64,000 bases of DNA. Origin: Octopus sinensis (Eukaryota). Made by a program: the position numbers and the translations under genes. Shown here in pieces: positions 29,400 to 64,000 of this stretch (its first letter is position 1; each line of letters begins with the position of its first letter). The stretch is from the NCBI RefSeq assembly GCF_006345805.1, contig NC_043021.1, positions 20,708,001 to 20,772,000 of the forward strand, written 5' to 3'. The notes beneath the pieces are model-generated. The model had not been told where the DNA came from and did not search any database. It saw only the letters and a list, made by a program, of their open reading frames with translations.

Positions 29400-29434
<35 letters not shown>

Positions 29435-29618
29435 GGACGGGTTTCTTTCAGTTTCCATCTACCAAATCCACTCACAAGGCTTTAGTCGGCTTGAGGCTAT
29501 AGTAGAAGACATTTGCCCAAGGTGCCACACAGTAGGACTGAACCATGTGGTTTGCAAGCAAGCTACTTACCACACAGCCACTCCTACGCCTATGCCACTC
29601 CTACACCTCTCTCTCTCT

Positions 29619-39237: not shown

Positions 39238-39989
39238 CAATAATAATAAAGGGTAAAATTAATTAATTAACTCGTAATTAATAATTCCACCAAGTAGTAT
39301 ACGGCATGTTAAAAGGACCATTTTTCGGTAAACTTAAACAATATTTTTATAATTATAATTAGGGTTCAACAAAAATTTGCTTCACCAACATACCGAACTT
39401 TAGAAAAGAGCAGCCAAAGAACCTTAGCTATTTCTTCTACTATAAGAAAAAACTCCCGGACAACAAATACTCAAAACAACCACGTAGACAGAGGGGGAAA
39501 ATAACGAAATTCACTCGGTATTTGATTACCTGTGGACGCGTTTCGGAATTAGATCGGTATGAAGAATGTAAAATCATACTTCATCAAAACATTTTCCTCT
39601 TCAGCACAGAATTCCAAGATTTTAAATTTGAGAGCATTGAAAAAATTGAACATACCTATCCAATTCAAGTGATATCAGACACACTATATCCAATGACCAG
39701 CACCAACGAATTTGTCCCTCGTTCCACAGTCAGCCGGATTTTTTTTGTTGAAGTCATTCCCGGAGTTAACAAAACCCATGTCCCATGGAATGGATAAAAT
39801 TACTCACCGTTGAAGACCACATTTCGACCACGGGCCCTCCAGTCTTTTCTCGGCCGAGACGTTTGTCAGCAAAAGCGGGATTAGGACATACGTTACAGCT
39901 CGGAATTGTATGTCTTTCTTCCAGTAACTGAGTTGCTCCATTACTCATGGTCCCCAGGAAATCCCTATCTGACACCAGTTGTCCAATAT

Positions 39990-41747
39990 AGGTCATCAGT
40001 CCCCTTAGTTCCTCACCATGTACGAAGGCGTGCGTGACAGTTTCACTGACACGCCCGCACCTCGGGCATGCGGGTGGGGTACCAACGCCATGCCTTGACA
40101 ACCTCTCTCGAACTGACAAGGCTGATCGGTAGCACAAGCAAGCCAAGGATGTCTGGAAGTTGTCCAGATATCTCGGCCCGAATGTCCTTCCGAACAGGTT
40201 GACAAGCTGTTCCTCTTCGAAGCCTAGTCTACCCCAGGATGTCGTCGGACATATGCTCTACCAACCCGTAGTGGTAGCCCCGCTAACGGTATTGCTTGTT
40301 CGGGAGAACAGAGCGAGTGCATGTCTGCACTCCCTCTTCCATTCGCTCATTTTTGTTCTTCGCGTGATCCATGCGCCCACGTCCCGAGGGAACGTCAATT
40401 GTGGCAGGAAGAACTTGACATGCGGTGACTACACCCGTTCACCATCCAAGTAGAGCCAGATTTTTCTCAACCTCAGCGCATCATCAGCCAAGAAATCCCT
40501 AACCCACCCTTTAACGGTTTCTGGCAGCACATGAGGCGCCTCACAAGTGGTGGTTTCCCATTCCACAAAAAGCGGAAAAGGATCCATTCCAGCTTGGTCA
40601 GCCACTCTCCAGGGCAAGGCACATCGGTTAGGCGGTTGGTTATCACAGATGCTATAAACACCTGTGCAACCTCGACCCTCCCTAGCAAGGATAGCAACCT
40701 CCCAGATCAAGTCTGGGTTATGGCCGTCACCTTGCCTGTGACCTCGCTCCAGTTTTTCTCCATCTGGAGATCTGGTCCAAACCAGACTCCAAGCAATTTA
40801 ACCGGGCCCTCCGTCCAACGTCCCACGACGCTGTTGGGAGACATCGACTTGCCCCTCCGGGTGCCGAGTTGCAAGCCGACTGATACTTCCTAGTTAATTT
40901 TTGCTCCTGCCACCTCTTCGTATCTTTTGATGGCCTCTTCTACACGAGGTAGCTGCCCTTCATCAGACACGATGATGGTGACATCATCCGCATATGCCGT
41001 CACTCTCCTACCGTAACATAGATCACGCGGATCTCCCCGTGTGGCCTCCAATTTCCGCAGTAGTGGCTCAAGTGCCAATACATACAGAAGCGGGTGCAGC
41101 CCTGGCGAATTGAATGTTCGATCACGAACGGCTTCGAGAAGAAACCGTTTACCCGGACGATTGAATCGATGTCGCTATACATAGCATTGAACCAACTACG
41201 AAAAGTCGGGTCCAGTCCAACCGCCCTGAGGACTGCTCCCAGATACCGATGGTCAACCCTATCGAATGCCTTAGACTGGTCTAAATTCACCAGTGCCCTA
41301 CATTTGCCAGAAATTTTACCCACCCGCTCTATAGTGTCGTGTATGAGGTGAAGGTTGTCGTGTATTGTCCTGCCTGGGATGGCACATGTCTGTGCTTCTC
41401 CCACCAGGTCGCCCACTACAAGTCTCAATCTCTTGGCTAACAATTGGCCAAAATCTTTAACTCTGTGTTTAGCAGAGTTATGGGCCTAAAGTTATTAATG
41501 TCATTCCCATTGCACGAGTCCTTCCTGATCAGTGTCACTACTCCCCGGCTCACATATTTAGGGATTCTCCTGTTCTGCTAGCAGTTCGCATATACACCGG
41601 CCAGTATGTTCCCGAATAAGTTTGGCATACTCTTATAAAATTCGTAAGGAAGACCATCCAGTCCGGGCGACTTGTCCCCGGGGCACTCAGAAAGCACCTC
41701 TATGACCTCCACAAATGTGATCGGCCTTTCATAGCGCTCCGCCTTAC
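39990..41747 (-). pseudogene. Tx1/L1-clade LINE ORF2 fragment, copy A
   Basis: NFRPITLLN, LDQSKAFDRVDH, IRQGC, YADD, GGLG and the zf-RVT CPRCGRVSETVTHAF; frameshifted. Confidence 0.9.
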
Positions 41748-42505: not shown

Positions 42506-44099
42506 TGCATTGATATTTTTTTCTTTCTCCTTTTAGTTTTTGTAAAATACATTCCTTTTCATTGAATTATTTTAAATGATATCAGTTTATACAACAAAAT
42601 AAGAGACGGAAAATGGGATTTCACGAGAGTCTCTTCTCATATACATTTTTACGTATCTTTTTATAGTTTTTATAAACTTCTTTGAGAAGAAGTGTGTCTT
42701 TTCTATCAGTTCCTTAAGGGGACACTAGAATATTGCAACAACTAAGCAAAACGATGACTAAAAAACGAGGTACTTATTCAAGAAGTCACCTAAGGGGACA
42801 GACACAATCTACACCTGTGATGTAAGACAATTGACTGTACAGTATCTCGCCTGCAAGGTACAGGGATATATATGTATATATATATGTGTGTATGTATATA
42901 TGTATGTATATACATATACTACGTAATATATGTGTATGTATATATATATACACAAAGGCACATAAGCATTATTTATAGAAACATATTTCTGCATAGAATA
43001 TATTATATATTATATAGTATATTCTTATTTCTTTACTACCCACAAGGGGCTAAACATAGAGGGGGCAAACAAGGACAGACAAACGGATTAAGTCGATTAC
43101 ATCGACCCCAGTGCGTAACTGGTACTTAATTTATCGACCCCGAAAGGATGAAAGGCAAAGTCAACCACGGCGGAATTTGAACTCAGAATGTAACGGCAGA
43201 CGAAATACGGCTACGCATTTCGCCCGGCGTGCCAACGATTCTGCCAGCTCGCCGCCCTAATATATAGTATATTCCTGTGAGAGCTGACAACATAAACAGT
43301 GTTTCCATGCCCCTCGTTGTAAAACAGTAAAGTCTCAAAGATTGTTCTTTCGTCTTATTTCATGGTACGGCTGCATTAACGAACCCCTATCTCACATGTC
43401 TGTTCCGTGAAAAGAAAGGAAAACTGAAAACCATAAACAGAACGGATTTACTTTCACTTTCACTTAAATTTCCCCGAAAAGTATAATCGCGCGCGCATTT
43501 CTGTATGTAACGATTGTGGAGGTTTATAATAAAGAATCTCGTTAATTTCATTTTCTGTTTCTGCTCGCTCTATCCATCCACCAGTCCGCCGGATCCATCC
43601 AAGTCCTACCTGCCTACCTGTCTGTCTGTCTTATATGCATGCTTGTGTAATTATGTCAGCGATGCGTTTGTATGAATGTAAATGTACACACACACACACA
43701 CACGCCTCTCTTTTACTTGTTTCAGGTATTTGACTGCGGCCATTCTGGAGCACCGCCTTTAGTCGAGCAAATCGACGCCAGGACTTATTCGTTGTAAGCC
43801 TAGTACTTATTCTATCAGTGTCTTTTCCCGAACCGCTAATATACGGGGACGTAAACACAGCAGTATCGGTTGTCAAATGATGTTGGGGGAACAAACACAG
43901 ACACACAAACACATATATATCCATATACATATATGTCTTTCAGTTTCCGTCTACCAAATCCACTCACAAGGCTGTGGTCGGCCCGAGGCTATAGTAGAAG
44001 ATACTTGCCCAAGGTGCCACGCAGTGGCACTGAACCCGGAATTATGTGGTTAATAAGCAAGCTACTTACCACACAGCCACTCGTGCACCTGTATGTGTG

Positions 44100-44982: not shown

Positions 44983-45372
44983 ATGAGCCTTAGACTCAGT
45001 CCAAGCGACATCCGCTATACTCAAGATTCAATTGCCTGTAAGTTCCGTAACGGGACAACATTGACAGAAACCATTTCAGATTTAGTCAAAGGTACAATCA
45101 CGCCTGACGGCATTCCTGTAATTTCGGTTTACCTAAAGGATGGGAAATACTACAGCACTGACAATAGGAGGCTATACGTTTTCAAAGAGCTGCAACGTCG
45201 GAGTCAACCAGACTTGAAGATAAGGGTTTACGTTACGTCGGCGGCACTATCACAATCGAAGTTCACGACGCTTAACGATGGCCAAAGTATAACAGTCCGA
45301 AGTGGATCAATAGGCTGGTTAAGCATGGATTTTGATGACTCAAGCACGGATTCTGATGACTTCTTCTTGTAG
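44983..45372 (+). CDS. Small intronless protein with a ParB/sulfiredoxin-like motif, copy A (129 aa)
   Basis: Intact, non-repetitive ORF; IRYTQDSI...IPVISV...YYSTDNRRLYVFK; acidic tail; present in all three units. Fold assignment is by motif recognition only. Confidence 0.75.
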   Translation: MSLRLSPSDIRYTQDSIACKFRNGTTLTETISDLVKGTITPDGIPVISVYLKDGKYYSTDNRRLYVFKELQRRSQPDLKIRVYVTSAALSQSKFTTLNDGQSITVRSGSIGWLSMDFDDSSTDSDDFFL

Positions 45373-45973: not shown

Positions 45974-48184
45974 ACTTTTTCTATTTAACGGACTCTTCGT
46001 TTGCCGAACGACATGCACGAATGATTTGTTTATTGTTATCAAATTTTCGTGCCGCACATGAGCTCCCCCTCTTCAAATTGACTTTATCTGAACAGGCATA
46101 CGGTGTGCCACGCGTCAAGTATTGAAGTGATCGTAAAACATCGCGAGATAAAAGTGATTCAAGGTCCAAAATCGAAAATTCGAAATCTGAAGAACTTTCC
46201 ATTATGAACTAATTACATAATCTCCGCTCTATTCTTCTGTTGGGTTGCTAACTCGAGTTTCCGTTGTCAACAAATATTCACATTCTCTGTGTAATATTTA
46301 ATTTCTTTAATAGGGCGAGTGACGTCCTGTTCTGATTCCAACGCTATACCAATATCGAGGGGTCGCCAACCGTCCTCCCCGGCTGAAACTTAAAAAAAAA
46401 AAATGGAGCGGGTACGAAGAGGTTGAAAAAAAGTTTGGGCGTAACTTCGGTATATGTACCGGAAGTACCAGATACATTTCAAGAAAGTGTTGTTTTTTTT
46501 TATAAATATGGGATGTTAGGAGAAAAGGGTTTCTGTTATCTCCAGAAATGTAAACAAAGCCACTTCCGGTACCTATACCGAAGGATCGCCAAAGTTTGAA
46601 ACTATCTTAACCATATCTGTTTTTTCTTTTTGTATTTTTGATAGACTGTAAAAAACGGGGAAAAAATGTAACTCAAAAACCCAAAATAATCTTGGGTAAA
46701 CAAAAATTTGAAAAGAAGAAAAAAAGGTGGCATTCTTTTGTTTTTGTTTTCTTTTCTATCGCAAAGTCTGTTGTGCTAAAAACGGGATTTGAATATACAC
46801 ACACATGTAAGGGCGAAGGTAAAGCGAATGTACACACTACCTTTTTTTTTTTTTCAAAATTTTTTTTTTTAAATATCTGTTTACGATATTGAAGAATACG
46901 ATTTTGTCCCAAAACCACGCTTTCAAAGTTTTAATTTCTTCCACCCCAATTTCTCAATTATTAACTTTTTTTTTCGAATTCTTTTCAATCCATGTAGAAA
47001 AAGAGATTACGAATCTGGGATTTAAAAAAAAAAAATTTAATCCCTCCTCCCCCACCCATCACCTCCCCGCTTTCAAAAAGCTCAAAATTCCCTTGATGTT
47101 TCACGCATTCAAAAATATCAGACCATTACCAGAAAACCCGACATGCTAGAAACAGCAGCTAAACGACATTATTTCTGGAAAAACTTCCTCACTTTCTAAA
47201 AAGTTAAAAGTGAAACATTGGGAGTTTTTAGCCTTTTGAAAGTGGGGAGTTGATGGATATTTGAAGTTGGACAAGGAATTTGAGTGTTTCTTTCAAGAAA
47301 ATTTTTAAAAAAATTCTCAAAGATTCGTCATCTCTCTATATGTCTACGTGGATTACAAGAAGGAGAAAAAAATCCAGCGATTAACTCCTCGATTCTTTTG
47401 CGTGGGATCAGGTACCATGACCTCCTAAAAATGTTGCAAATCCCTTATTTTGGTTCGGAATCCTTCTCGGAATCATTGGAATTTTTTTTTTTTTTTTGTT
47501 TCGTTGAATGAATTCCTGTGACCTAATATGCTACAAAATCCTTTTTGGGGTCCGAAAAACGGGATGGGGTGAGGTGGAAGCCTCGGAAATTTCAACCCCC
47601 ACCCCCCATTGATTTTTTCACCCGCACGATTTTCACTAAGGAAAAAGAAAATAGTAATAAAAATCGGGCCCAAACTAATTTTTGCGTGTGTGTGTGTGTG
47701 TTGAGAAAGATGAACGATTTAAAACAAATATATCTTAATTGTTGTGTGAGAAAGTATATATATTCTGATGATAAAATATTGTATCTTTCAAAAGCATCCT
47801 AAATTTATAGACTACTAGCAGTATCTCCCGGCGTTGCTCGAGATTGTAAGGGAAATAACTATAAAGAATTTTTAGAGAGTTATAGCCAAAAAATAGCAAA
47901 AGATGCATTAAATTCCCCTTCATCAGCTGCCCCTGGTTCGACTCAATGCATGTTTCGAAGGTAAAGGCAGGGATACATATATACATATATACGACGGGCT
48001 TCTTTTAGTTTCTGTCTACCAAATCCACTCACAAGGCTTTGATCAGCCCGAGGCTATAGTAGAAGACACTTGCCCAAGGTGCCATGCAGTGGGACTGAAC
48101 CCAGAACCATGTGGATTGCCTAAATGCTGTCTATAAATAAACGCGAGAATAAAGTTCATCTTCATAGCGAATTCGAATTAAGGC

Positions 48185-48337
48185 TGTGGTGTGTGCGAGA
48201 GATTCGAATATAAAGGAACCTACCTTCTCTTCGATCTGATGGAGACCCTTCAGTGGTAACGGATCCTTCGACACAGCCCGACCCGAACGCTAGAGATAGC
48301 AGCTGCTTCGCCCAAACTTAGCAACGTCTTCACCCGT
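48185..48337 (-). repeat. Gypsy LTR fragment (matches 3628-3777)
   Basis: TGGTGTG.GCGAGAGATT...GAACGCTAGAGATAGCAGCTGCTTC...CACCCGT shared with the 5' LTR. Confidence 0.9.
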
Positions 48338-50285
48338 TTGTCAGCAAAAGCGGGATTAGGACATACGTTACAGCTCGGAATTGTATGTCTTTCTTCCAGT
48401 GACTGCGTCGCTCCATTACTCATTGTCCCCAGGAAATCCCTATCTGACACCAGTTGTTCAATATAGGTTATCAGTCCCCTTAGTTCCTCACAATGTACGA
48501 AGGCGTGCGTGACAGTTTCACTGACACGCCCGCACCTCGGGCATGTGGGTGGGGTACCAACGCCATGCCTGACAACCTCCCTCGAACTGACAAGGCTGAT
48601 CGGTAGCACAACTAGGCCAAGGATGTCTGGAAGTTGTCCAGATACTCGGCCCAAATGTTTTCCAAACAGGTTGACAAGCTGTTCCTCTTCGAAGCCTGTC
48701 ACCCCCAGGATGTCGTCGGACATATGCTCTACAACCCGTAGTGGTAGCCCCGCTGCCGGTATTGCTTGTTCGGGAGAACAGAGCGAGTGCATGTCTGCAC
48801 TCCCTCTGCCATTCGCTCATTTTTTGTTCTTCGCGTGATCCATGCGCCCACTTCCGAGGGAACGTCAATTGTGGAAGGAAGAACTTGACATGCGGTGACT
48901 ACACCCGTTCACCATCCAGGTAGAGCCAGTTTTCTCAACCTCAGCGCATCATCAGCCAAGAAATCCCTAACCCACCCTTTAACGGTTTCTGGCAGCACAT
49001 GAGGCGCCTCACAAGTGGTGGTTTCCCATTCCACAAAAAGCGGAAAAGGATCCGTTCCAGCTTGGTCAGCCACTCCCCAGGGCAAGGCACATCGGTTAGG
49101 CGGTTGGTTATAACAGATGCTATAAACACCTGTGCAACCTCGACCCTCCCTAGCAAGGACAGCAACCTCCCAGACCAAGTCTGGGTTATGGCCGTCACCT
49201 TGCCTGTGACCTCGCTCCAGTTTTTCTCCATCTGGAGATCTGGTCCAAACCAGACTCTAAGCAATTTAACCGGGCCCTCCGTCCAATGTCCCACGACGCT
49301 GTTGGGAGACATCGACTTGCCCCTACGGGTGCCGAGTTGCAAGCCGACTGAACTTCCTAGTTATTTTGCTCCTGCCACCTCTTCGTATTTTTTGATGGCC
49401 TCTTCTACACGAGGTAGCTGCCCTTCATCAGACACGATGATGGTGACATCATCCGCATATGCCGTCACTCTCCTACCGTAACATAGATCACGCGGATCTC
49501 CCCGCGTGGCCTCCAATTCCGCAGCAGTGGCTCAAGTGCCAATTAACAGAAGCGGAGGCAGGCCTGGCGAATTGAATGTTCGATCACGAACGGCTTCGAG
49601 AAGAAAAAACCGTTACCCGGACGATTGAATCGATGTCGCTATATACATAGCATTGAACCATCTACGAACAGTCGAGTCCAGTCCAACCGCCCTGAGGACT
49701 GCTCCCAGATACCGATGGTCAACCCTATCGAATCCTTAGACTGGTCTAAATTCACCAGTGCCCTACATTTGCCAGAAATTTTACCCACCCGCTCTATAGT
49801 GTCGTGTATGAGGTGAAGGTTGTCGTGTATTGTCCTGCTGGGATGGCACATGTCTGTGCTTCTCCCACCAGGTCGCCCACTACAGTCTCAATCTCTTGGC
49901 TAACAATTGGCCAAAATCTTTACTCTTGTGTTTAGCAGAGTTATGGGCCTAAAGTTATTAATGTCATTCCCCTGCTCGGGTCCTTCCTGATCAGTGTCAC
50001 TACTCCCCGGCTCACATATTAGGATTCTCCTGTTCTGCTACCATTCGCATATACACCGGCCAGTATGTTCCCGAACAAGTTTGGCATACTCTTATAAAAT
50101 TCGTAAGGAAGACCATCCAGTCCGGGTGACTTGTCCCCCGGGGCACTCAAGAAAGCACCTCTATGACCTCCACAAATGTGATCGCCTTTCATAGCGCTCC
50201 GCCTTACATGCCGAGAGACACGGGCCGCCGGCCAGGAAATCCCGATTGCATCTTTCCAGTGGGTTTCTGGTGCTGGGATCGATAG
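48338..50285 (-). pseudogene. Tx1/L1-clade LINE fragment, copy B
   Basis: Same motifs as copy A. Confidence 0.88.
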
Positions 50286-50651
50286 CTTACGGTCTCGACA
50301 TCTCCCTGTCAGCCGGTTGATGTTGGTCTTGAGCTCTTGGAGAACCTATCGCAGTTTATAAACTTGTTCTCGTGCGAGTGTGTCTTCCCTACATTCGTCC
50401 CCTGTTCTTGGGTGCAAACTATTTGCTCTTACCAAGCCCAATGGTGACTTCCGCCCCCATAGCAATTGGTGGTACTCTGTGACAGGTGTGTGTCTTCAAT
50501 TTCTAAATGCCTGTCAGCCAAATTTTCTCCTACCCAGCTACGGGTGGGTACTAAGCTAGACTATGAGGCTGAAGCCCATGCCACTAGAGCTTTCACTAAC
50601 TTGCCTTCTGAGTCCCCAAAGGTCATCCTTAAACTAGACTTCAAAAACGCC
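50286..50651 (+). pseudogene. CRE-like RT fragment, copy B (3' part deleted)
   Basis: Ends abruptly after KLDFKNA. Confidence 0.78.
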
Positions 50652-51616
50652 ATACGTAATATGTGTATGTATATATATATACACAAAGGCACATAAGCAT
50701 TATTTATAGAAACATATTTCTGCATAGAATATATTATATATTATATAGTATATTCCTTATTTCTTTACTACCCACAAGGGGCTAAACATAGAGGGGGCAA
50801 CAAGGACAGACAACGGATTAAGTCGATTACATCGACCCCAGTGCGTAACTGGTACTTAATTTATCGACCCCGAAAGGAGGATGAAAGGCAAAGTCAACCA
50901 CGGCGGAATTTGAACTCAGAATGTAACGGCAGACGAAATACGGCTACGCATTTCGCCCGGCGCGTGCCAACGATTCTGCCAGCTCGCCGCCCTAATATAT
51001 AGTATATTCTGTGAGAGCTGACACACATAAACAGTGTTTCCATGCCCCTCGTTGTAAAACAGTAAAGTCTTAAAGATTGTTCTTTCGTCTCTTTTCATGG
51101 TACGGCTGCATTAATGAACCCCTATCTCACATATGTCTTCCATGAAAAGAAAGGAAAACCAAAAACTTTAAATAGAACGGATTTACTTTCACTTTAATTT
51201 CCACGAAAAGCATAATCGCGCGCGCACGTCTGTATTTTGTATCCTGGCTATTTCAGATGACGCATTCGTTCCTATCACCTCAAGTCGTCGCTTGCTAAAA
51301 CACTCGCAACTGAAATTATATACATTCACACATCTCAAACAAGCCTTCACCTACAATATTATATTTCAATCAATCACTTCGGATACTATGGAATATTAAT
51401 TAAGACTTCTACACACTACGTTAATCGAATTCTATGCATTAAGTATCGGCAATTTTCCTTGATTACGAACGATCCTTTCGATGTCATTTCTCGACTGAAT
51501 TTAGAAATCCTGGAAAATACATACTGTGAGTAACTTTCCACTCTTGAATTATTTTCAATAGCATCTACGGTATTTCTTTCCACCTGGTACGAAGACTATA
51601 ATACACTCACAACACA

Positions 51617-52024
51617 ATGAGCCTTAGACTCAGTCCAAGCGACATCCGCTATACTCAGATTCAATTGCCTGTAAGTTCCGTAACGGGACAACATTGACAG
51701 AAACCATTTCAGATTTAGTCAAAGGTACAATCACGCCTGACGGCATTCCTGTAATTTCGGTTTACCTAAAGGATGGGAACTAACAGCACTGACAATAGGA
51801 GGCTATACGTTTTCAAAGAGCTGCAAAGTCGGAGTCAACCAGACTTGAAGATAAGGGTTCACGTTACGTCGGCGGCACTACCACCATCGAAGTTCACGAC
51901 GCTTAACGATGGCCAAAGTATAAAAGTCCGAGGACCATCATCAAACAACCGGTTAAGCATGGATTTTGATGACTTATACATGGATTTTGATGACTTATAC
52001 ATGGATTCCGATGATGAATTTTAA
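51617..52024 (+). pseudogene. ParB/Srx-like ORF, copy B (frameshifted as assembled)
   Basis: 1-nt loss near 51657 and 2-nt loss near 51780 relative to A and C; 3' half matches copy C. Confidence 0.7.
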
Positions 52025-55000
52025 AAAAATATTCCATTGCTAAAAGAAAGAAAAAAACAACAAAATCCAAAAAGCACGTTGCCGAATTTTACTGTTCCGA
52101 AAAAACAATCTATAAACTTCAAATTTACCCTCATGTCACCGACAGCATCTCTTCATTTAGAGAAGTGTCAAAAATCCAAAGTCTCTTGTATTTTATTTCA
52201 ATAACCAACTCGCAAACCAAGTCATAATAATTGCCATTATGCAAGGAACAAAACAAAACAAAACAAAAACAATCTTTGCACGGAAAAAGTTAATTTGGGC
52301 GGTGTTTGGTTTCCGTAAGTAGTTTTAGTAAATCTTTACTCCCTACTTTTAAAAACTGTAAATCTAAAAATGGCCGAAAGCGAAAACGTTGCCGAACGAG
52401 TGTGGGACAAAATAAATAAACTAAATAAAAATTTAACCTTTGAAGGTATTTTTTTAATATGCTGGCCATGATAAAATTTCTTTTCGAAAAAATTTCATCC
52501 TATATTAGATGTATATATATATATTGTTAGCCACTACACACATTTTTTTCTCTCCTTGTTTTTTCTGTGTACCTTTCTGTAGAAGAGCGTAGGCTCGAAA
52601 CGTAAAAGACTTTTTCTATTTAACGGGACTCTTCGTTTGCCGAACGACATGCACGAATGATTGTTTATTGTTATCAAATGTTCGTGCCGCATATGAGCTC
52701 CCCCTCTTCAATTGACTTTATCTGAACAGGCACACGGTGTGCACGCGTCAAGTGTTGAAGTGATCGTCGAACATCGCGAGATAAAAGTGATTCAAGGACC
52801 AAAATCGAAAATTCGAAATCTGAAGAACTTCCATTATGAACTAATTACATAATCTCCGCTCTATTCTTCTGTGGGTTGCTAACTCGAGTTTCCGTGTCAA
52901 CAAATATTCACATTCTCTGTGTAATATTTAATTTCTTTAATAGGGCGAATGACGTCCTGTCCTGATTCCAACGCTATACCAATATCGAGGGGTCGCCAAC
53001 CGTCCTCCCCGGCTGAAACTTAAAAAAAAAATGGAGCGGGTACGAAGAGGTTGAATAAAAGTTGGGCGCGTAACTTCGGTATAGGTACCGGAAGTACCAG
53101 ATACATTTCAAGAAGTGTTGTTTTTTTTTTTAAATATGGGAGATGTTAGGAGAAAAGGGTTCTGTTATCTCCAGAAATGTAAACAAAGCCACTTCCGGTA
53201 CCTAAACCGAAGGATCGCCAAAGTTTGAAACTATCTTAACCATATCTGTTTTTTCTTTTGTATTTTTGATAGACTGTAAAAAACGGGGAAAAAATGTAAC
53301 TCAAAAACCCAAAATAATCTTGGGTAAATAAAAATTTGAAAAGAGAAGAAAAAAGGGTGCATTCTTTGTTTTTTGTTCTTTTCTATCGCAAAGTCTGTTG
53401 TGCTAAAAACGGGATTTGAATATATATATTATATATAATATACACACATGTAAGAGCGAAGGTAAGCGAATGTACACACTTTTTTTTTTTTTCAAAATTT
53501 TTTTTTTTTAATATCTGTTTACGATATTGAAGAATACGATTTTGTCCAAAAACCACGCTTTCAAAGTTTTAATTTCTTCCACCCCAATTTCTCAATTATT
53601 AACTTTGTTTTTCGAATTCTTTTTAATCCATGTAGAAAAACAGAGATTACGAATCTGGGATTTAAAAAAAAAAAATTTACCCCCTCCCCCACCCATCACC
53701 TCCCCGCTTTCAAAAAGCTCAAAATTCCCTTGATGTTTCACGCATTCAAAAATCTCAGACCATTACCAGAAAACCCGACATGCTAGAAACAGCAGCTAAC
53801 TAAACACATTATTCTGGAAAAACTTCCTCACTTTCTAAAAAGTTAAAAGTGAAACATTGGGAGTTTTTAGCCTTTTGAAAGTGGGGAGCTGATGGATATT
53901 GAAGTTGGACAAGGAATTTGAGTGTTTTTTTCAAGAAAATTAAAAAAAAAATTCTCAAAGATTCGTAATCTCTCTATATATGTCTACGTGGATTACAAGA
54001 AAGAGAAAAAAATCCAGCGATTAACTCCTCGATTCTTTTGCGTGGGATCAGGTACCATGACCTCCTAATATGCTGCAAATCCCTTATTTTGGTTCGGAAG
54101 AAGAGGGGGACTCCCCGCTTCTCGGAATCATTGGAATTTTTTTTTTTGTTTCGTTGAATGAATTCCTGTGACCTAATATGCTACAAAACCCTTTTTGGGG
54201 TCCGAAAAACGGGGTGGGGTGAGGTGGAAGCCTCGGAAATTTCAACCCCTACCCCCAATTGATCTTTTTACCCGCACGATTTTCACTAAGGAAAAAGAAA
54301 ATAGTAATAAAAATCGGGCCCAAACTAATTTTTGCGTGTGTGTGTGTTGAGAAAGATGAACGATTTAAAACAAATATATCTTAATTGTTGTGTGAGAAAA
54401 TATATATATTCTGATGATAAAATATTGTATCTTTCAAGAGCATCCTAAATTTATAGACTACTAGCAGTATCTCCCGGCTTTGCTCGGGTTTGTAAGGGAA
54501 ATAACTATAAAGAATTTTTAGAGAGTTATAGCAAAAAAATAGCAAAAAATGCATTAAATTCCCCTTCATCAGCTGCCCCTGGTTCGACTCAATGCGTGTT
54601 TCGAAGGTAAAGGCAGGTATATATATATACATATATACGACGGGCTTCTTTTAGTTTCCGTCTACCAAATCCACTCACAAGGCTTTGATCAGCCCGAGGC
54701 TATAGTAGAAGACACTTGCCCAAGGTGCCACGCCGTGGGACTGAACCCAGAACCATGTGGTTGGTAAGCAAGCTACTTACCACACAGCCATTCCTGATGC
54801 AAAAAAAAAATACACACATGACAACACTCACTCTCTCTCTCTCTCTCACCTCCAATTCATATACATCTTTCACTTTCTGCTCTCACTCCAAGGCAAATGC
54901 CGCTGTATATATCGTGCACACACACACAGGCCAAGCGATACGGACCAAGTCTAGATACACATACACAGGCTGACAAGTATTTACTTTCATTTTCGGTTGT

Positions 55001-56089
55001 TGCCGTTCGGCTTTTCCTGCTTACTCACCGCTTTACATTTACACAATGAATTTCATACACACACACACACACACACACACACTCCCATTGACTTTTATGT
55101 CTATGAGTTGAATAGTGAAACACACTGTATGTGTGTGTGTGTGTGTGTGTGTGAATACAAATATATTAAGTGGAACACGCTCGCACGTGTACCTGCTATC
55201 TTCCATGTATACGTACATCAGTGGTTTTCAACCAGGGTTCCGCCAGTACAGTCCAGGGGTTGCGCAAGAAGTTACAAAAATGCTAAAATCGACAGTAATT
55301 TTTAATTCTCCTGTGCAGATATGTGTGCATATAAGACAATTAAATTGTTGCACAGGGGTTCCTCGAGCCAGTGGAACGTTTCCTTGTGGTTCCGCTCCAG
55401 CAAAAAGGTTGAAAAGCACTGCTCTATACATACATAAATACATCGTGCGAGTGTTTCACTATTCATGAAAGTCAATGGGTCCATGTGTGTCTGTCTTTAT
55501 GACTGTGTTTGTTTCAACCCGACCGCTTGACAACCCATTTTCTTTACTACCCCCACAAGGGGCTAAACACAGAGGAGACAAAGAAGGACAGGCGGATTAA
55601 GTCGATTATATCGACCCAGTGCGTGACCGGTACTTAATTTATCGCTGGCAGAACCGTTAGCACGCCGGGCAAAATACTTAGCGTAATTTCGTCTGTCTAC
55701 ATGTTCTGAGTTCAAATTCTGCCGAGGTCGACTTTGCCTTTCATCCTTTCGGGGTCGATAAATTAAGTACCAGTTACGCACTGGGGTCGATGTAATCGAC
55801 TCGATCTGTTGGTCTGTCTTTCTTTGTTCCCTCTATGTTTAGCCCCTTGTGGGTAAATAAAGAAATAGGTACTTAATTTATCCACATCGAAAAGATGAAA
55901 GGGAAAGTCAACCTCGGCATCATCACCTCATTTTACATGTCTCTGTAAATTTTGGAGTCAATCCGACGGGATCTAGTGGCCTTTAACCCGTTCTCAATGC
56001 CAAAATCAGACGGAAAAACAAACAAACAAATTTTTCGCATTTCAGTTATATAAATAGAGGAGATATTTATATATATATATATATATATA

Positions 56090-56268
56090 TAGGGAGAGTT
56101 TACGAAAAAAAACAAAAGACGAAGACAGGTGGTGTACAAAACAAACAGATGTATTAGTATAACGCTCAGGAATAGGAAAAGTCTTTTACGTTTCGAGCCT
56201 ACGCTCTTCTACAGAAAGAGACACAGAAAAAACAAGGAGAGAAAAAAATGTGTGTAGTGGCTAACGAT
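56090..56268 (-). mobile_element. Penelope-type element with a hammerhead-like motif (56182-56219)
   Basis: Reverse complement of the 18085 family with a TCTTT/AAAGA stem I; abuts (TA)n. Confidence 0.65.
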
Positions 56269-56465
56269 CAATCATGGCGGAAACCACAAATTAACCAACA
56301 CATCGATTGGACCACGTTTATAGCTTATTTTTTAAAACAAAGCACGACATGAGAAAATAGGTGATGTAACATATCTTACGGCTGTTTCTGATCGGATTGC
56401 CTAAATGCTGTCTATAAATAAACGCGAGAATAAAGTTCATCTTCATAGCGAATTCGAATTAAGGC

Positions 56466-56617
56466 TGTGGTGTGTGCGAGAGATTCGAAATAAAGGAACC
56501 TACCTTCTCTTCGATCTGATGGAGACCCTTCAGTGGTAACAGATCCTTTGACACAGCCCGACCCGAACGCTAGAGACAGCAGCTGCTTCGCTCAAACTTA
56601 GCAACGTGTTCACCCGT
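56466..56617 (-). repeat. Gypsy LTR fragment (matches 3628-3777)
   Basis: Same as the 48185 fragment. Confidence 0.9.
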
Positions 56618-58570
56618 TTGTCAGCAAAAGCGGGATTAGGACATACGTTACAGCTCGGAATTGTATGTCTTTCTTCCAGTGACTGAGTTGCTCCATTACT
56701 CATGGTCCCCAGGAAATCCCTATCTGACACCAGTTGTCCGATATAGGTTATCAGTCCCCTTAGTTCCTCACAATGTACGAAGGCGTGCGTGACAGTTTCA
56801 CTGACACGCCCGCACCTCGGGCATGTGGGTGGGGTACCAACGCCATGCCTTGACAACCTCCCTCGAACTGACAAGGCTGATCGGTAGCACAACTAGGCCA
56901 AGGATGTCTGGAAGTTGTCCAGATACCTCGGCCCGAATGTCCTTCCGAACAGGTTGACAAGCTGTTCCTCTTCGAAGCCTAGTCTCCCCCAGGATGTCGT
57001 CGGACATATGCTCTACCAACCCGTAGTGGTAGCCCCGCTGCCGGTATTGCTTGTTCGGGAGAACAGAGCGAGTGCATGTCTGCACTCCCTCTGCCATTCG
57101 CTCATTTTTGTTCTCCGCGTGATCCATGCGCCCACGTCCCGAGGGAACGTCAATTGTGGAAGGAAGAACTTGACATGCGGTGACTACAGACGTTCACCAT
57201 CCAGGTAGAGCCAGTTTTCTCAACCTCAGCGCATCATCAGCCAAGGCATCCCTAACCCACCCTTTAACGGTTTCTGGCAGCACATGAGGCGCCTCACAAG
57301 TGGTGGTTTCCCATTCCACAAAAAGCGGAAAAGGATCCGTTCCAGCTTGGTCAGCCACTCCCCAGGGCAGGGCACATCGGTTAGGCAGTTGGTTATCACA
57401 GATGCTATAAACACCTGTGCAACCTCGGCCCTCCCTAGCAAGGATAGCAACCTCCCAGATCAAGTCTGGGTTATGGCCGTCACCTTGCCTGTGACCTCGC
57501 TCCAGTTTTTCTCCATCTGGAGATGTGGTCCAAACCAGACTCCAAGCAATTTAACCGTCCAACGTCCCACGAAGCTGTTTGGAGACATCGACTTGCCCCT
57601 ACGGGTGGCGAGGTGCAAGCCGACTGATACTTCCTAGTTAATTTTTGCTCCTGCCACCTCTCCGTATCTTTTGATGGCCTCTTCTACACGAGGTAGCTGC
57701 CTTTCATCAGACACGATGATGGTGACATCATCCGCATATCCCGTCACTCTCCTACCGTAACATAGATCACGCCGATCTCCCCGCGTGGCCTCCAAATTCC
57801 GCAGCAGTGGCTCAAATGCCAATACATACAGAAGCGGAGGCAGGCCTGGCGAATTGAACGTTCGATCACGAACGGCTTCGAGAAGAAACCGTTTACCCGG
57901 ACGATTGAATCGATGTCGCTATACATAGCATTGAACCATCTACGAACAGTCGAGTCCAGTCCAACCGCCCTGAGGACTGCTCCCAGATACCGATGGTCAA
58001 CCCTATCGAATGCCTTAGACTGGTCTAAATTCACCAGTGCCCTACATTTGCCAGAAATTTTACCCACCCGCTCTATAGTGTCGTGTATGAGGTGAAGGTT
58101 GTCGTGTATTGTCCTGCCTGGGATGGCACATGTCTGTGCTTCTACCACCAGGTCGCCCACTACAAGTCTCAATCTCTTGGCTAACACTTGGCCAAAATCT
58201 TTAACTCTGTGTTTAGCAGAATTATCGGCCTAAAGTTATTAATGTCATTCCCCTTGCTCGGGTCCTTCCTGATCAGTGTCACTACTCCCCGGCTCACATA
58301 TTTAGGGATTCTCCTGTTCTGCTAGCAGTTCGCATATACACCGGCCAGTATGTTCCCGAACAAGTTTGGCATACTCTTATAAAATTCGTAAGGAAGATCA
58401 TCCAGTCCGAGCGACTTGTCCCCGGGGCACTCAGAAAGCACCTCTATGACCTCCACAAATGTGATCGGCCTTTCATAGCGCTCCGCCTTACATGCCGAGA
58501 GACACGGGCCGCCGGCCAGGAAATCCCGATTGCATCTTTTCCAGTGGGTTTCTGGTGCTGGGATCGATAG
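56618..58570 (-). pseudogene. Tx1/L1-clade LINE fragment, copy C
   Basis: ORFs 57744-58187, 57634-57822 (YADD), 57226-57450 and 56530-56892 (zf-RVT). Confidence 0.9.
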
Positions 58571-59790
58571 CTTACGGTCTCGACATCTCCCTGTCAGCCG
58601 GTGATGCTGGTCTTGAGCTCTTGGAGAACCTATCGCAGTTTATAAACTTGTTCTCGTGCGAGTGTGTTCTTCCCTACATTCGTCCCCTGTTCTTTGGTGC
58701 CAAACTATTTGCTCTTACCAAGCCCAATGGTGACTTCCGCCCCATAGCAATTGGTGGTACTCTGCGACAGGTGTGTCTGTCTTCAATTTCTAAATGCCTG
58801 TCAGCCAAATTTTCTCCTACCCAGCTACGGGTGGGTACTAAGCTAGACTATGAGGCTGAAGCCCATGCCACTAGAGCTTTTACTAACTTGCCTTCTGAGT
58901 CCCCAAAGGTCATCCTTAAACTAGACTTCAAAAACGCCTTCAATTCCATCAGTTGGGATGTCATCTTCCGTGTAGTAAGGGAGACTGCTCAAAACCTCTA
59001 TCACTTTGCTTGGCAAGCTTATCGGGAGCCCTCCAACCTCGCCTTTGGTGACCACCTCATCCCACCTGTCTTTGAAGTCCAACAGGATGACCCACTTGAA
59101 CCATATTTATTATTATTGTCTTTTTTTTATCATCAAACTAGCAGTATCGCCCGGCGTTGCTCGGGTTTGTAAGGGAAATAACTATATAAGCATTTTTAGA
59201 GAGTTATAACAAAAAAATGCATTAAAAATGGAAAAAAATGATGGTGAATTTTTTTTTAATCGTTGACTCATCGTAGACATTTTTAGAGAGTTACTTCCCT
59301 TATATATTAGCGAAAAAAATGCATTAAAATGGAAAAAAATGATGGTAAATTTTTTTTTAATCGTAGACTCATCGTAGACGCGCGCTAATACCCAGAAGGC
59401 CTCGATATGAATCACGACTATAAGATACCCGGTTTTGGTTAAACTGCACCGCAAAATGTGGGAGTAGTTAGGAATATAAATCGTAGGAGACAGACACACA
59501 ACCTCTCTTTTATATATAAAGATATTGATCTGTCAAAGATATTGATTAGTGAATACAGGGGTGGGTGGGCAAATGCAGACATACAGTTGTTTGACCCTTC
59601 AGTATTCAGATTATTCTATCAAATGTAATATTTTCTTTTATTCATGTCGTTTTGAAGTTATCCTGAAATTAACAGGATGACCCACCCACTTGGACCTTCT
59701 CTATTTGCCCTGGCTATTGACGATGTTATCAAGATGGGAGCTGACCTAGACTTGAATGTCTGGTATCTTGACAATGCTTGTTTGGGGGCT
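58571..59790 (+). pseudogene. CRE-like RT fragment, copy C (longest), with nested inserts
   Basis: ORF 58492-59172: DISLSAGDAGLELLENLSQFINL...GAKLFALTKPNGDFRPIAIG...LDFKNAFNS; WYLDN motif near 59760. Confidence 0.82.
59138..59522 (-). mobile_element. Non-autonomous Helitron, 385 bp, present only in unit C
   Basis: Minus strand A|TC...CCCGAGCAACGCCGGG hairpin...CTAG|T; empty AT site in unit A near 42237. Truncated 3' ends at ~47813 and ~54461. Confidence 0.92.
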
Positions 59791-61170
59791 CCTGCATTGA
59801 TATTTTTTTCTTTCTCCTTTTAGTTTTTGTAAAATACATTCCTTTTCATTGAATTATTTTAAATGATATCAGTTTATACAACAAAATAAGAGACGGAAAA
59901 TGGGATTTCACGAGAGTCTCTTCTCATATACATTTTTACGTATCTTTTTATAGTTTTTATAAACTTCTTTGAGAGGAAGTGTCTCTTTTCTATCAGTTCC
60001 TTAAGGGGACACTAGAATATTGCAACAACTAAGCAAAACGATGACTAAAAAACGAGGTACTTATTCAAGAAGTCACCTAAGGGGACAGACACAATCTACA
60101 CCTGTGATGTAAGACAATTGACTGTACAGTATCTCGCCTGCAAGGTACAGGGATATATATGTATATATATATGTGTGTATGTATATATGTATGTATATAC
60201 ATATACTACGTAATATATGTGTATGTATATATATACACACAAAGGCACATAAGCATTATTTATAGAAACATATTTCTGCATAGAATATATATATATTATA
60301 TAGTATATTCCTTATTCTTTACTACCCACAAGGGGCTAAACATAGAGGGGGCAAACAAGGACAGACAAACGGATTAAGTCGATTACATTGACCCCAGTGC
60401 GTAACTGGTACTTAATTATCGACCCCGAAAGGATGAAAGGCAAAGTCAACCACGGCGGAATTTGAACTCAGAATGTAACGGCAGACGAAATACGGCTACG
60501 CATTTCGCCCGGCGTGCCAACGATTCTGCCAGCTCGCCGCCCTAATATATAGTATATTCCTGTGAGAGCTGACACCATAAACAGTGTTTCCATGCCTCTC
60601 GTTGTAAAACAGTAAAGTCTCAAAGATTGTTCTTTCGTCTCTTTTCATGGTACGGCTGCATTAACGAACTCCTATCTCACATGTCTGTTCCGTGAAAAGA
60701 AAGGAAAAACCGAAAACTATAAACAGAACGAATTTACTTTCACTTTAATTTCCACGAAAAGCATAATCGCGCGCGCACGTCTGTATTTTATATCCTGGCT
60801 ATTTCAGATGACGCATTCGCTTCCTATCACCTCAAGTCGTCGCTTGCTAAACGCACTCGCAACTGAAATTATATACATTCACAACATCTCAAGCCTTCAC
60901 TTCTACAATATTATATTTCAATCAATCACTTCGGATACTATGAATATTAATTAAGACTTCTACACACTACGTTAATCGAATTCTATGCATTAAGTATCGG
61001 CAATTTTCCTTGATTACGAACGATCCTTTCGATGTCATTTCTCGACTGAATTAGAAATCCTGGAAATATACATACTGTGAGTAAACTTTCCACTCTTGAA
61101 TTATTTTCAATAGCATCTACGGTATTTCTTTCCACCTGGTACGAAGACTATATATACACTCACAAACACA

Positions 61171-61581
61171 ATGAGCCTTAGACTCAGTCCAAGCGACATC
61201 CGCTATACTCAAGATTCAATTGCCTGTAAGTTCCGTAACGGGACAACATTGACAGAAACCATTTCAGATTTAGTCAAAGGTACAATCACGCCTGACGGCA
61301 TTCCTGTAATTTCGGTTTACCTAAAGGATGGGAAATACTACAGCACTGACAATAGGAGGCTATACGTTTTCAAAGAGCTGCAAAGTCGGAGTCAACCAGA
61401 CTTGAAGATAAGGGTTCACGTTACGTCGGCGGCACTACCACCATCGAAGTTCACGACGCTTAACGATGGCCAAAGTATAAAAGTCCGAGGACCATCATCA
61501 AACAACCGGTTAAGCATGGATTTTGATGACTTATACATGGATTTTGATGACTTATACATGGATTCCGATGATGAATTTTAA
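61171..61581 (+). CDS. ParB/Srx-like small protein, copy C (136 aa)
   Basis: Intact ORF; first 71 codons identical to copy A; tail contains a 21-nt tandem repeat (MDFDDLY x2). Confidence 0.75.
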   Translation: MSLRLSPSDIRYTQDSIACKFRNGTTLTETISDLVKGTITPDGIPVISVYLKDGKYYSTDNRRLYVFKELQSRSQPDLKIRVHVTSAALPPSKFTTLNDGQSIKVRGPSSNNRLSMDFDDLYMDFDDLYMDSDDEF

Positions 61582-64000
61582 AAAAATATTCCATTGCTAA
61601 AAGAAAGAAAAAAACAACAAAATCCAAAAAGCACGTTGCCGAATTTTACTGTTCCGAAAACAATCTATAAACTTCAAATTTACCCTCATGTCACCGACAG
61701 CATCTCTTCATTTAGAGAAGTGTCAAAAATCCAAAGTCTCTTGTATTTTATTTCAATAACCAACTCGCAAACCAAGTCATAATAATTGCCATTATGCAAG
61801 GAACAAAACAAAACAAAACAAAAAACAATCTTTGCGGAAAAAGTTAATTTGGGCGGTGTTTGGTTTCCGTAAGTAGTTTTAGTAAATCTTTACTCCCTAC
61901 TTTTAAAAACTGTAAATCTAAAAATGGCCGAAAGCGAAAACGTTGCCGAACGAGTGTGGGACAAAATAAATAAACTAAATAAAAAATTTAACCTTTGAAG
62001 TATTTTTTTAATATGCTGGCCATTGATAAAATTTCTTTTCGTAAAAAATTTCATCCTATATTAGATGTATATATATATATATTGTTAGCCACTACACACA
62101 TTTTTTTCTCTCCTTGTTTTTTCTGTGTACCTTTCTGTAGAAGAGCGTAGGCTCGAAACGTAAAAGACTTTTTCTATTTAACGGACTCTTCGTTTGCCGA
62201 ACGACATGCACGAATGATTTGTTTATTGTTATCAAATGTTCGTGCCGCATATGAGCTCCCCCTCTTCAAATTGACTTTATCTGAACAGGCACACGGTGTG
62301 CCACGCGTCAAGTGTTGAAGTGATCGTCGAACATCGCGAGATAAAAGTGATTCAAGGACCAAAATCGAAAATTCGAAATCTGAAGAACTTTCCATTATGA
62401 ACTAATTACATAATCTCCGCTCTATTCTTCTGTTGGGTTGCTAACTCGAGTTTCCGTTGTCAACAAATATTCACATTCTCTGTGTAATATTTAATTTCTT
62501 TAATAGGGCGAATGACGTCCTGTCCTGATTCCAACGCTATACCAATATCGAGGGGTCGCCAACCGTCCTCCCCGGCTGAAACTTAAAAAAAAAAATGGAG
62601 CGGGTACGAAGAGGTTGAATAAAAGTTTGGGCGTAACTTCGGTATAGGTACCGGAAGTACCAGATACATTTCAAGAAGTGTTGTTTTTTTTTATAAATAT
62701 GGGATGTTAGGAGAAAAGGGTTTCTGTTATCTCCAGAAATGTAAACAAAGCCACTTCCGGTACCTAAACCGAAGGATCGCCAAAGTTTGAAACTATCTTA
62801 ACCATATCTGTTTTTTCTTTTTGTATTTTTGATAGACTGTAAAAAACGGGGAAAAAATGTAACTCAAAAACCCAAAATAATCTTGGGTAAATAAAAATTT
62901 GAAAAGAAGAAAAAAAGGTGGCATTCTTTTGTTTTTGTTTTCTTTTCTATCGCAAAGTCTGTTGTGCTAAAAACGGGATTTGATATATATTATATATATA
63001 TATACACACATGTAAGAGCGAAGGTAAAGCGAATGTACACACTTTTTTTTTTTTTTCAAAATTTTTTTTTTTTAATATCTGTTTACGATATTGAAGAATA
63101 CGATTTTGTCCAAAAACCACGCTTTCAAAGTTTAATTTCTTAATTCTTCCACCCCAATTTCTCAATTATTAACTTTGTTTTCGAATTCTTTTTAATCCAT
63201 GTAGAAAAACAGAGATTACGAATCTGGGATTTAAAAAAAAAAAATTTAATCCCCCCTCCCCCACCCATCACCTCCCCGCTTTCAAAAAGCTCAAAATTCC
63301 CTTGATGTTTCACGCATTCAAAAATCTCAGACCATTACCAGAAAACCCGACATGCTAGAAACAGCAGCTAAACGACATTATTTCTGGAAAAACTTCCTCA
63401 CTTTCTAAAAAGTTAAAAGTGAAACATTGGGAGTTTTTAGCCTTTTGAAAGTGGGGAGCTGATGGATATTTGAAGTTGGACAAGGAATTTGAGTGTTTTT
63501 TCAAGAAAATTAAAAAAAAAATTCTCAAAGATTCGTAATCTCTCTATATGTCTACGTGGATTACAAGAAAGAGAAAAAAATCCAGCGATTAACTCCTCGA
63601 TTCTTTTGCGTGGGATCAGGTACCATGACCTCCTAATATGCTGCAAATCCCTTATTTTGGTTCGGAAGAAGAGGGGGACTCCCCGCTTCTCGGAATCATT
63701 GGAATTTTTTTTTTTGTTTCGTTGAATGAATTCCTGTGACCTAATATGCTACAAAACCCTTGTTGGGGTCCGAAAAACGGGGTGGGGTGAGGTGGAAGCC
63801 TCGGATATTTCAACCCCTACCCCCAATTGATCTTTTTACCCGCACGATTTTCACTAAGGAAAAAGAAAATAGTAATAAAAATCGGGCCAAACTAATTAAT
63901 TTTTGCGTGTGTGTGTGTTGAGAAAGATGAACGATTTAAAATAAATATATCTTAATTGTTGTGTGAGAAAGATATATTCTGATGATAAAATATTGTATCT

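Follow-up and report, generated by a model that had tools for sequence, protein, structure and literature searches.

To our knowledge, animal proteins of the ParB fold are essentially unstudied, with the exception of sulfiredoxin. The bacterial Tox-ParBL1 domain was described by Zhang, de Souza, Anantharaman, Iyer and Aravind (2012) as having a predicted ParB fold, an N-terminal serine, an [ST]...[NT][RT][RT] motif and HINT processing; metazoa were already among the carriers listed, and sulfiredoxin was considered a separate acquisition (PMC3482391). The only characterised ParB-fold toxin that we found is ToxB, a CdiA-CT warhead that acts via ATP binding and hydrolysis and is toxic in plant cells (bioRxiv 10.64898/2026.05.05.722872). 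The present analysis concerns a 64,000-nt stretch of Octopus sinensis DNA (hereafter the window), in which an intact, intronless open reading frame (ORF) of 136 aa, ORF C (61171-61581, plus strand), encodes what is by its sequence a Tox-ParBL1 homologue, followed by a linker and an acidic repeat tail. ORF C belongs to a tandem array, the unusual feature of which is a segment at the coding end that is not homogenised with the rest and in which nearly all changes alter the protein, the core displaying ordinary concerted evolution.

In ticks, the dae genes, which encode Tae amidase effectors, provide a case of a bacterial interbacterial-toxin domain that was domesticated by an animal, kept intact and expanded in a lineage-specific manner. 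The dae products are secreted antibacterial enzymes with demonstrated activity, whereas the octopus ParBL1 proteins have no signal peptide; by analogy, the parallel suggests a defence role for the latter. The octopus array would represent a bacterial killing domain kept intact in animals, tandemly amplified and furnished with variable tails and a fast-changing surface, and on this account it is a good candidate for a new effector of innate immunity or genetic conflict, as well as a tractable example of how selection can work against concerted evolution.

The ParBL1 domain and its relatives

The domain occupies codons 1-106 of ORF C (61171-61488, plus strand), as delimited by homology, AlphaFold2 modelling and Foldseek. 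It was assigned to Tox-ParBL1 on the motif and architecture by which that domain was defined (PMC3482391), and on these grounds it is homologous to a bacterial polymorphic-toxin warhead. It shares 44% identity with the C-terminal domain of the PT-HINT toxin P0003 (PF07591 followed by the domain; E = 1e-25 pairwise, 1.3e-14 database-wide), and this bacterial homologue stops exactly at the residue aligned to R106. The family of approximately 1,860 cluster representatives (1,859 in an exhaustive HMMER search at E <= 0.001) has no Pfam model and is strikingly expanded in molluscs, in cephalopods and massively in bivalves. Amongst 60 members scanned, seven carried PT-HINT and one PT-TG. In bacterial members the domain lies at the extreme C-terminus, after the PT-HINT or PT-TG pretoxin modules, whereas in animal members, carried by many bivalves, Styela, Dimorphilus and several Octopus paralogues, it is N-terminal. 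The octopus domain shares the N-terminal serine, the N-R-R motif and the predicted ParB fold with its bacterial homologues; unlike them, it is N-terminal, stand-alone and predicted to be cytosolic, without a trafficking or pretoxin region, and its copies add an acidic-aromatic tail (a CaaX box in paralogues) and are tandemly amplified.

The motif D60-N61-R62-R63-L64 (61348-61362, plus strand) is the counterpart of the ParB arginine box. Amongst 80 relatives, N61, R62, R63 and L64 were invariant (80/80), and the near-invariant S16 (61216-61218, plus strand) and D60 were each conserved in 77; the motif is intact in ORF C, in its paralogue ORF A and in all readable copies, and K93, T95, T96, G100 and R106 are also nearly invariant family-wide. 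An AlphaFold2 model built from an 83-sequence alignment had a mean predicted local distance difference test (pLDDT) score of 85.8, at approximately 96 over residues 1-100 and below 50 from residue 111, and placed the NRR motif at a strand-to-helix junction (E55-58, H61-73). The top 19 PDB matches of this model in Foldseek were all ParB, Noc, sulfiredoxin, Atu1540 or 1vk1, and the domain as modelled has the ParB/sulfiredoxin fold. ORF C had no Pfam match at E values up to 10, PF02195 included, and sequence searches of the PDB with the single sequence and with a profile retrieved nothing meaningful (levansucrase matches at E of about 0.4 were noise). Exact-protein look-ups of ORF A, ORF C, O. 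bimaculoides P0002 and P0011 returned no matching contigs.

The ParB/Noc CTPase domain (PF02195) has an arginine-rich motif at the same strand-to-helix junction and yielded the best structural matches (7ol9, 7bnr and 6sdk; probability 0.98-1.00), with TM-scores of only about 0.4 over approximately 90 residues. The octopus motif is, however, DNRRL, and neither a GERRxRA box nor a PF02195 match was found, nor does a helix-turn-helix or dimerisation domain follow the fold, only a disordered tail, so that ORF C falls outside the canonical ParB CTPases. Sulfiredoxin is likewise a small, single-domain animal ParB-fold protein (TM-score of 0.57 normalised to Arabidopsis Srx 6ky4; human 1xw3 and 1xw4 were also matched), but the octopus motif has Asn61, the catalytic Cys of sulfiredoxin is absent from D-N-R-R-L, no Cys is conserved in the family alignment and there is no sequence-level similarity. 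ToxB, unlike octopus ParBL1, was found with PF02195, belongs to the classical Tox-ParB group, is delivered by contact-dependent inhibition and is paired with an immunity protein; it may nonetheless serve as a useful mechanistic precedent. The octopus domain probably binds a nucleotide or phosphate. Since ToxB belongs to the PF02195 group and not to ParBL1, chemistry on nucleoside triphosphates (NTPs) or phosphate at S16 and D60-N61-R62-R63 can only be inferred, and the label 'toxin' for ParBL1 is similarly an analogy drawn from context.

An adjacent immunity gene of the Imm-SUKH or Imm44 type would be expected for a bacterial Tox-ParBL1. A bacterial metagenome contig (L002) carries at 1031-2025 an orphan cassette in which a truncated PT-HINT is fused to a ParBL1 warhead; next to it, with a 4-nt overlap with the toxin stop, comes an ORF of 130 aa that may encode an immunity protein, and a similar pair of toxin end and small ORF lies upstream (1-865). 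The putative immunity ORFs of this contig, including that of 130 aa, had no matches in Pfam. In the octopus unit, reverse-transcriptase (RT) fragments were the only family matches obtained, no search having been aimed at immunity-type proteins, and none would be expected for a domesticated copy.

The surroundings of ORF C are animal DNA, with microsatellites, repeats resembling short interspersed nuclear elements (SINEs) and RT fragments. Recent bacterial contamination was rejected in view of the octopus repeats around the gene, the occurrence of the gene in two or three Octopus species and an intron in bivalve homologues. In bivalves this intron lies inside the domain and one ParBL1 gene adjoins a C1q gene, and these are therefore established animal genes. 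The O. bimaculoides orthologue P0002 is an intact protein of 124 aa. The protein encoded by ORF C is predicted to be cytosolic, as it begins with the domain at residue 1 and has no signal peptide; a secreted or venom role was rejected on these features together with the CaaX ends of paralogues. As a separate observation, the clam Mactra antiquata (L003) harbours two inverted ParBL1 genes 6 kb apart (2928-4357, minus strand; 10001-11281, plus strand) next to a C1q-domain gene, each with an intron after approximately codon 36 and an acidic Ser/Asp tail.

The tandem array and its divergent 3' segment

The window contains three copies of the gene, namely ORF A (44983-45372, plus strand; 129 aa, intact) and copy B (51617-52024, plus strand), both of which were found by a BLAST search of ORF C against the window, and ORF C itself. 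The adjoining sequence was taken from the O. sinensis CM016883.1 stretch that starts at window position 51171 (L001), positions 1-12830 of which are 100% identical to window 51171-64000 (CM016883.1:20759171-20772000, GCA_006345805.1), which places the window at 20708001-20772000 of this chromosome. Copies D and E lie just past the window end, at L001 19201 and 28412, hence the three copies of the original prediction were an undercount and the total is at least five. The part of the array within the window (39860-64000, plus strand) consists of segmental-duplication units of 6.6-9.6 kb that are 94.6-97% identical in self-BLAST blocks and spaced, from A to E, by 6634, 9554, 9200 and 9211 nt. Each unit contains one ParBL1 ORF, SINE-like repeats and fragments of long interspersed nuclear elements (LINEs) and RT genes; as fragmented RT ORFs are present in every unit, the ParBL1 gene was duplicated together with dead LINE pieces. 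Copy B differs from C by one substitution and by deletions of 1 nt and 2 nt (net -3), between which codons 15-55 are off frame.

It was confirmed that codons 1-71 are nucleotide-identical between A and C, and that codons 72-106 carry exactly the five non-synonymous differences that had been claimed (CGT/AGT R72S, TAC/CAC Y83H, TCA/CCA S90P, CAA/CCA Q91P and ACA/AAA T104K). The identity of the core had been attributed to purifying selection or conversion, of which the former was unsupported. Per ungapped columns, A and C differ at 0/208 in the core, at 1/610 in the adjacent 3' non-coding sequence and at 8/334 (raw) in the nearest 5' non-coding sequence, six of the latter being one shifted block (2-3 events). 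The core is thus not distinguishable from adjacent non-coding DNA (0/208 against 9/944 raw; Fisher P = 0.38) or from the near flanks overall (P = 0.38-1.0), and the run of identity at 61098-61383 takes in 73 nt of upstream non-coding sequence.

Purifying selection holding the DNRRL-containing N-terminal core whilst the rest drifts would agree with the intactness of S16, D60-N61-R62-R63-L64, K93, T95, T96, G100 and R106 in all readable copies. It does not, however, explain flanks that are equally identical, and it predicts synonymous-only change in a core where no synonymous difference was seen. Across the family, variability is no lower in the N-terminal than in the C-terminal half, 53% of column entropy falling in codons 1-52, yet these codons received only 2 of the 21 recent domain changes counted at this locus and the second locus described below (P = 3e-5), and the invariant residues K93-R106 sit within the divergent part. 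This explanation is largely refuted and we give it scarcely any credence. Since the flanks are equally identical and the predicted synonymous-only change is not seen, the identity of the core is that of a young or homogenised whole unit, generated by concerted tandem duplication.

The differences between A and C are instead clustered in the 3' part of the ORF (maximum of 16 per 100 nt; permutation P < 5e-5). In the five-copy alignment this cluster corresponds to a hypervariable segment of approximately 190 bp (61417-61608, plus strand), present as type I in A, D and E and as type II in B and C. The segment starts after codon 72, ends at 61579-61608 just past the stop codon, and takes in the final third of the domain (Y83H, S90P, Q91P and T104K), the linker, the tail and the first bases past the stop. 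The partition of A, D and E from B and C (ADE|BC) is marked by 15 substitution sites, 13 of them within 61417-61581 (13/142 in the segment against 2/1741 elsewhere; Fisher P = 1.4e-13), and no enrichment of other partitions was found in the segment (P = 0.19). On a stem branch only two changes occurred in approximately 1.7 kb of flank, yet about 20 nucleotide differences and three in-frame indels at the 3' coding end were acquired or retained on it. A SINE-containing insertion (60282-60625), common to units B and C and missing at this position in D and E, marks the B/C lineage independently at the structural level.

Short-tract gene conversion between copies operates in the array. A tract in the 5' flank (60683-60731) has four substitution sites and one indel within 50 nt that group A with B against C, D and E (AB|CDE), B having A-like states, and in combination with the ADE|BC sites at 61417-61507 it yields all four gametes; conversion is accordingly the better of the two readings that were initially offered for the core. 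When O. bimaculoides P0002 was used as a protein outgroup, sites 83 (C/Y/H) and 104 (M/T/K) were each found in three states, and some of the outgroup states occur in type I and others in type II, a distribution that points to two old lineages of the segment and not to a single burst of derived change.

The linker (codons 107-115, GPSSNNRLS; 61489-61515, plus strand) is predicted to be disordered and contains CATCATCA and AACAAC micro-repeats; type II differs from type I here by nine nucleotides and a 3-nt indel (GPSSNNR versus SGSIG/AW). The acidic-aromatic tail of C (61516-61578, plus strand; stop at 61579-61581) comprises three 21-nt (7-aa) units. The reported 21-nt repeat is real, ATGGATTTTGATGACTTATAC occurring twice at 61516-61557 ahead of a third, degenerate unit (Tandem Repeats Finder period 21, 2.7 copies), but the tails do not diverge completely as had been stated, since A (type I, two-unit tail at 45325-45372, plus strand) also has a period-21 array of the same unit family (2.0 copies, 90% matches). 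Copies B and C encode MDFDDLY-MDFDDLY-MDSDDEF, D and E encode MDFDGLY-MDFDDSS-TDSDDFF-L, and A encodes MDFDDSS-TDSDDFF-L, without the first unit of D and E, each being followed by a stop. The change between the A and C tails resolves into unit gain or loss, one homogenisation of a unit to its neighbour, an in-frame 18-nt indel with the type-I stop and a few point changes, of which one is synonymous (TCT/TCC). Many independent tail substitutions were ruled out by this decomposition into 21-nt units and the 18-nt indel. Within MDFDDLY, FDDL occurs twice in B and C, once as FDGL in D and E, and is absent from A; it might be a putative Atg8-type or adaptor-binding short linear motif, or the tail might be a cis-inhibitor of the basic active site.

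Amongst the animal members retrieved, 29 have an acidic C-terminus that closes with an aromatic residue (...DDDDFW, ...DGDLYGW, ...DEDYFF) and 17 have a CaaX box there (CCVIL, CTIL, CAIL), whereas 33 of the 43 members with a C-terminal or internal domain, the bacterial toxin-type architecture, have no tail. On these comparisons the tail appears to be an animal-specific, recurrent module, and each of the three octopus tandem clusters examined varies in its number of units. The second O. sinensis cluster (L004, CM016863.1) consists of two CaaX-tailed ParBL1 copies 3.5 kb apart and unlinked to the main array (10001-10648 and 13529-14272), which differ in repeat number (215 versus 247 aa). The third, an O. 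vulgaris pair (P0008; L006, GCA_951406725.2) at 10001-11326 and 17445-18284, differs only in the number of tail repeats (441 versus 279 aa). The tails of these L004 and L006 paralogues are long, consist of Pro/Thr-rich repeats and close with CCVIL or WCVIL, which is a CaaX box of the geranylgeranyl type.

Substitution patterns at two unlinked loci

Diversifying selection acting on top of concerted evolution is considered here the best explanation of the hypervariable segment, with a probability somewhat above even. In this account the units are young, and unequal crossing-over together with short-tract gene conversion maintains their similarity; the N-terminal 71 codons and the non-coding flanks are identical because of this homogenisation. 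The segment, which spans beta5-loop-beta6 of the domain, the linker and the tail, would escape homogenisation as two old haplotypes that are distinguished by little other than amino-acid-changing substitutions, in-frame indels and the gain, loss or homogenisation of tail units. Selection, the inferred cause, would target a partner- or target-recognition surface and short linear motifs in the tail, itself a putative interaction or targeting module, and the array would hold functionally different isoforms.

The probability of a synonymous change was approximately 0.26-0.28, with a ratio of transitions to transversions of 23:21 in the flanks. The L004 pair has two substitutions in 1,050 nt of 5' flank and none in codons 1-52, followed by 14 non-synonymous to 1 synonymous difference in codons 53-106 and 15:2 in the remaining coding part (29:3 in total; pN/pS 2.75), in addition to a 32-codon difference in the number of YEESPRT repeats. 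Coding sites from codon 53 onwards differ at 32/489 against 2/1050 in the 5' flank (P = 1.6e-14). When the domain changes of the main locus and L004 were pooled, the ratio of non-synonymous to synonymous changes (N:S) was 22:1 (binomial P = 0.003-0.009), and for the main-locus domain together with all of L004 it was 37:3 (P = 0.0006-0.003). Residues 72-104 hold 16 of the 21 domain changes, against 36% expected from family-wide variability (P = 1.8e-4), and positions 90 and 91 were changed at both loci. The suggestion of a C-terminal diversification like that of conflict genes has therefore held as a hypothesis, through the bounded coding-end segment and its repetition at L004, whilst the dN/dS argument is underpowered at the main locus alone.

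Several results weigh against selection. The 5:0 non-synonymous count between A and C is not significant (P = 0.22), in agreement with the original caveat that the numbers are small, and the same applies to the 8:0 domain changes among the five copies (E29K, G43S, K55N, R72S, Y83H, S90P, Q91P and T104K; P = 0.09). Conservative addition of linker and tail events gives P of approximately 0.02-0.05, the independence of these events being doubtful, as the linker and tail differences may derive from a few complex events and so represent fewer independent events than differing nucleotides. The L004 total reaches only P = 0.08 in a Fisher test on Nei-Gojobori (NG86) counts. Synonymous sites in the variable part of L004 are also raised (3/109 against 2/1050 in the flank, P = 0.007), hence this part is also older or imported, and age or mosaic history, not selection, accounts for part of the contrast. 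The L006 pair displays no domain divergence and is too young for the domain to be tested, and amongst the remaining loci the single O. vulgaris copy of L005 (P0010) is uninformative for a pairwise test and the bivalve pair of L003, at approximately 60-79% amino acid identity, is too old for flanks to be compared with coding sequence. No donor of the divergent tract was found as a further copy in the window or L001, or as a close relative among 5.8 billion proteins. In the assembly, three of the five copies (B, D and E) have frameshifts which, if genuine, would mean that much of the array is in decay. The literature yielded no experimental data on any ParBL1 protein, and no population, expression or biochemical data were found for the octopus copies.

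The main rival is a neutral mosaic, in which the array is young, constraint was relaxed, ectopic gene conversion or unequal crossing-over pasted in the 3' segment from an unsampled or lost diverged copy, the tail underwent slippage, and the non-synonymous excess arose by chance with a contribution from multi-nucleotide events. The sharp bounds of the tract and the demonstrable short-tract conversion are in keeping with such a history, as are the micro-repeats of the linker, the reduction of the tail differences to a few events and the raised synonymous divergence of the L004 variable part. Furthermore, non-synonymous change over the domain tree (8/318 nt) is close to the flank rate (46/1529 nt), compatible with an omega of approximately 1, and the eight changed positions fall on family-variable columns (permutation P = 0.002), the near-invariant residues being untouched throughout. 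A donor that was neutral or under purifying selection should, however, have brought proportional synonymous differences, which is at odds with the combined N:S of 22:1 in the domain and 37:3 overall; moreover, the divergent segment stops at the stop codon here and lies for the most part within coding sequence at L004, and the same sub-region has changed at two unlinked loci. We regard the neutral mosaic as a possible account, though less probable than selection.

A further explanation is that some of the paralogues are allelic haplotypes or mis-polished duplicates that were placed in tandem in a PacBio-era assembly. The comparison of A with C would in that case be partly one of alleles, and multi-mapping reads used in polishing would have contributed to the patchwork. 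Private indel events outnumber private substitutions in B to E (35 versus 17), with 20 versus 6 in B (over 1.9 kb), 6 versus 7 in C, 4 versus 0 in D and 5 versus 4 in E, compared with 1 versus 19 in A, and most private indels are 1-nt deletions. The unit of copy B (51076-53000) alone contains 17 deletions and 3 insertions, all of 1-2 nt, an error-like profile that suggests inadequate polishing of this unit in the reference. Two deletion sites common to B and E, as well as chimeric NCBI models at both O. sinensis loci, also speak for an artefact. Conversely, the units differ in spacing and insertions, type I and type II each occur in at least two independently assembled copies, tandem ParBL1 pairs are also present in the independent O. 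vulgaris assembly GCA_951406725.2, and consensus errors do not yield clustered, in-frame, amino-acid-changing substitutions. We consider such an artefact improbable.

Because 1-nt deletions are in excess in a copy-specific manner, it is likely that B, D and E lost their frames through consensus errors, and their frameshifts constitute weak evidence for pseudogenes. Were the array nevertheless decaying, and the pattern without functional meaning, the frameshifts would be real, and the domain-wide substitution rate, close to that of the flanks, and the lack of any expression data found would fit. Yet A and C are intact ORFs in which every invariant residue is retained, the indels that distinguish the haplotypes are all in frame (3, 18 and 21 nt), the N:S skew is opposite to that of neutral decay, and the O. 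bimaculoides orthologue is intact. A decaying array is thus very hard to credit. As a side observation, the deletions shared by B (51658 and approximately 51780) and E (L001 approximately 28453 and 28575) lie at equivalents of 61212 and 61333-61339 and in each copy sum to -3 nt; they are either a systematic consensus error in the same contexts or a real lesion in non-adjacent copies of different haplotype.

More broadly, the mollusc family might comprise cell-autonomous defence or conflict effectors derived from a bacterial ParB-fold warhead, with a conserved core, a rapidly diversifying beta5-loop-beta6 surface and swappable C-terminal targeting modules, although we think it unlikely that this wider proposal holds. 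The core would handle NTPs or phosphate, and the beta5-loop-beta6 surface would recognise or evade a variable partner. The targeting modules would consist either of a variable number of acidic-aromatic linear motifs or of a CaaX anchor of the geranylgeranyl type, and the arrays would store distinct isoforms shielded by selection from homogenisation.

Gene models and repeats around the copies

The closest protein match of ORF C was the O. sinensis NCBI model LOC118767871 (P0001, 151 aa; L001 10001-28819), at 100% identity over 85% of the ORF length. This model extends over 18.8 kb and combines the body of C with tail units of downstream copies, and it is chimeric, since ORF C has its own stop codon. 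At the second locus, LOC115211823 (P0009; L004 10001-14272) takes its N-terminal part from one copy and its tail from a downstream one, although here, too, every copy has a stop codon of its own. Both O. sinensis ParBL1 gene models are therefore chimeric across tandem copies, which, together with the three copies that may be wrongly frameshifted, carries a lesson for annotation.

The RT fragments of the array units (RVT_1 and zf-RVT, in both orientations) were located at 39860-41747, 48113-50651 and 56394-59172, with the RVT_1 and zf-RVT matches of the last at 56533-59169. A SINE-like repeat of approximately 210-260 nt is present in at least nine (about 10) copies in the window, at 87-94% identity and in both orientations (4109-4315, 21930-22188, 25740-25975, 32620-32827, 38433-38674, 43020-43260, 50750-50997, 55644-55871 and 60289-60547); it was not recognised by Rfam at the gathering threshold or by ARAGORN, neither of which returned anything for the window. 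The remains of a long terminal repeat-type retroelement lie on the minus strand at 869-3590, with matches to an RNase H-like RVT_3 domain, a gag aspartyl protease and a zf-CCHC knuckle. A second interspersed repeat, of approximately 380-400 nt and 68-92% identity, was found at 5864-6246, 6419-6812, 13819-14203, 19391-20035, 27358-27761, 29286-29585, 43706-44088 and 54618-54796, and is also present at the O. vulgaris locus L005.

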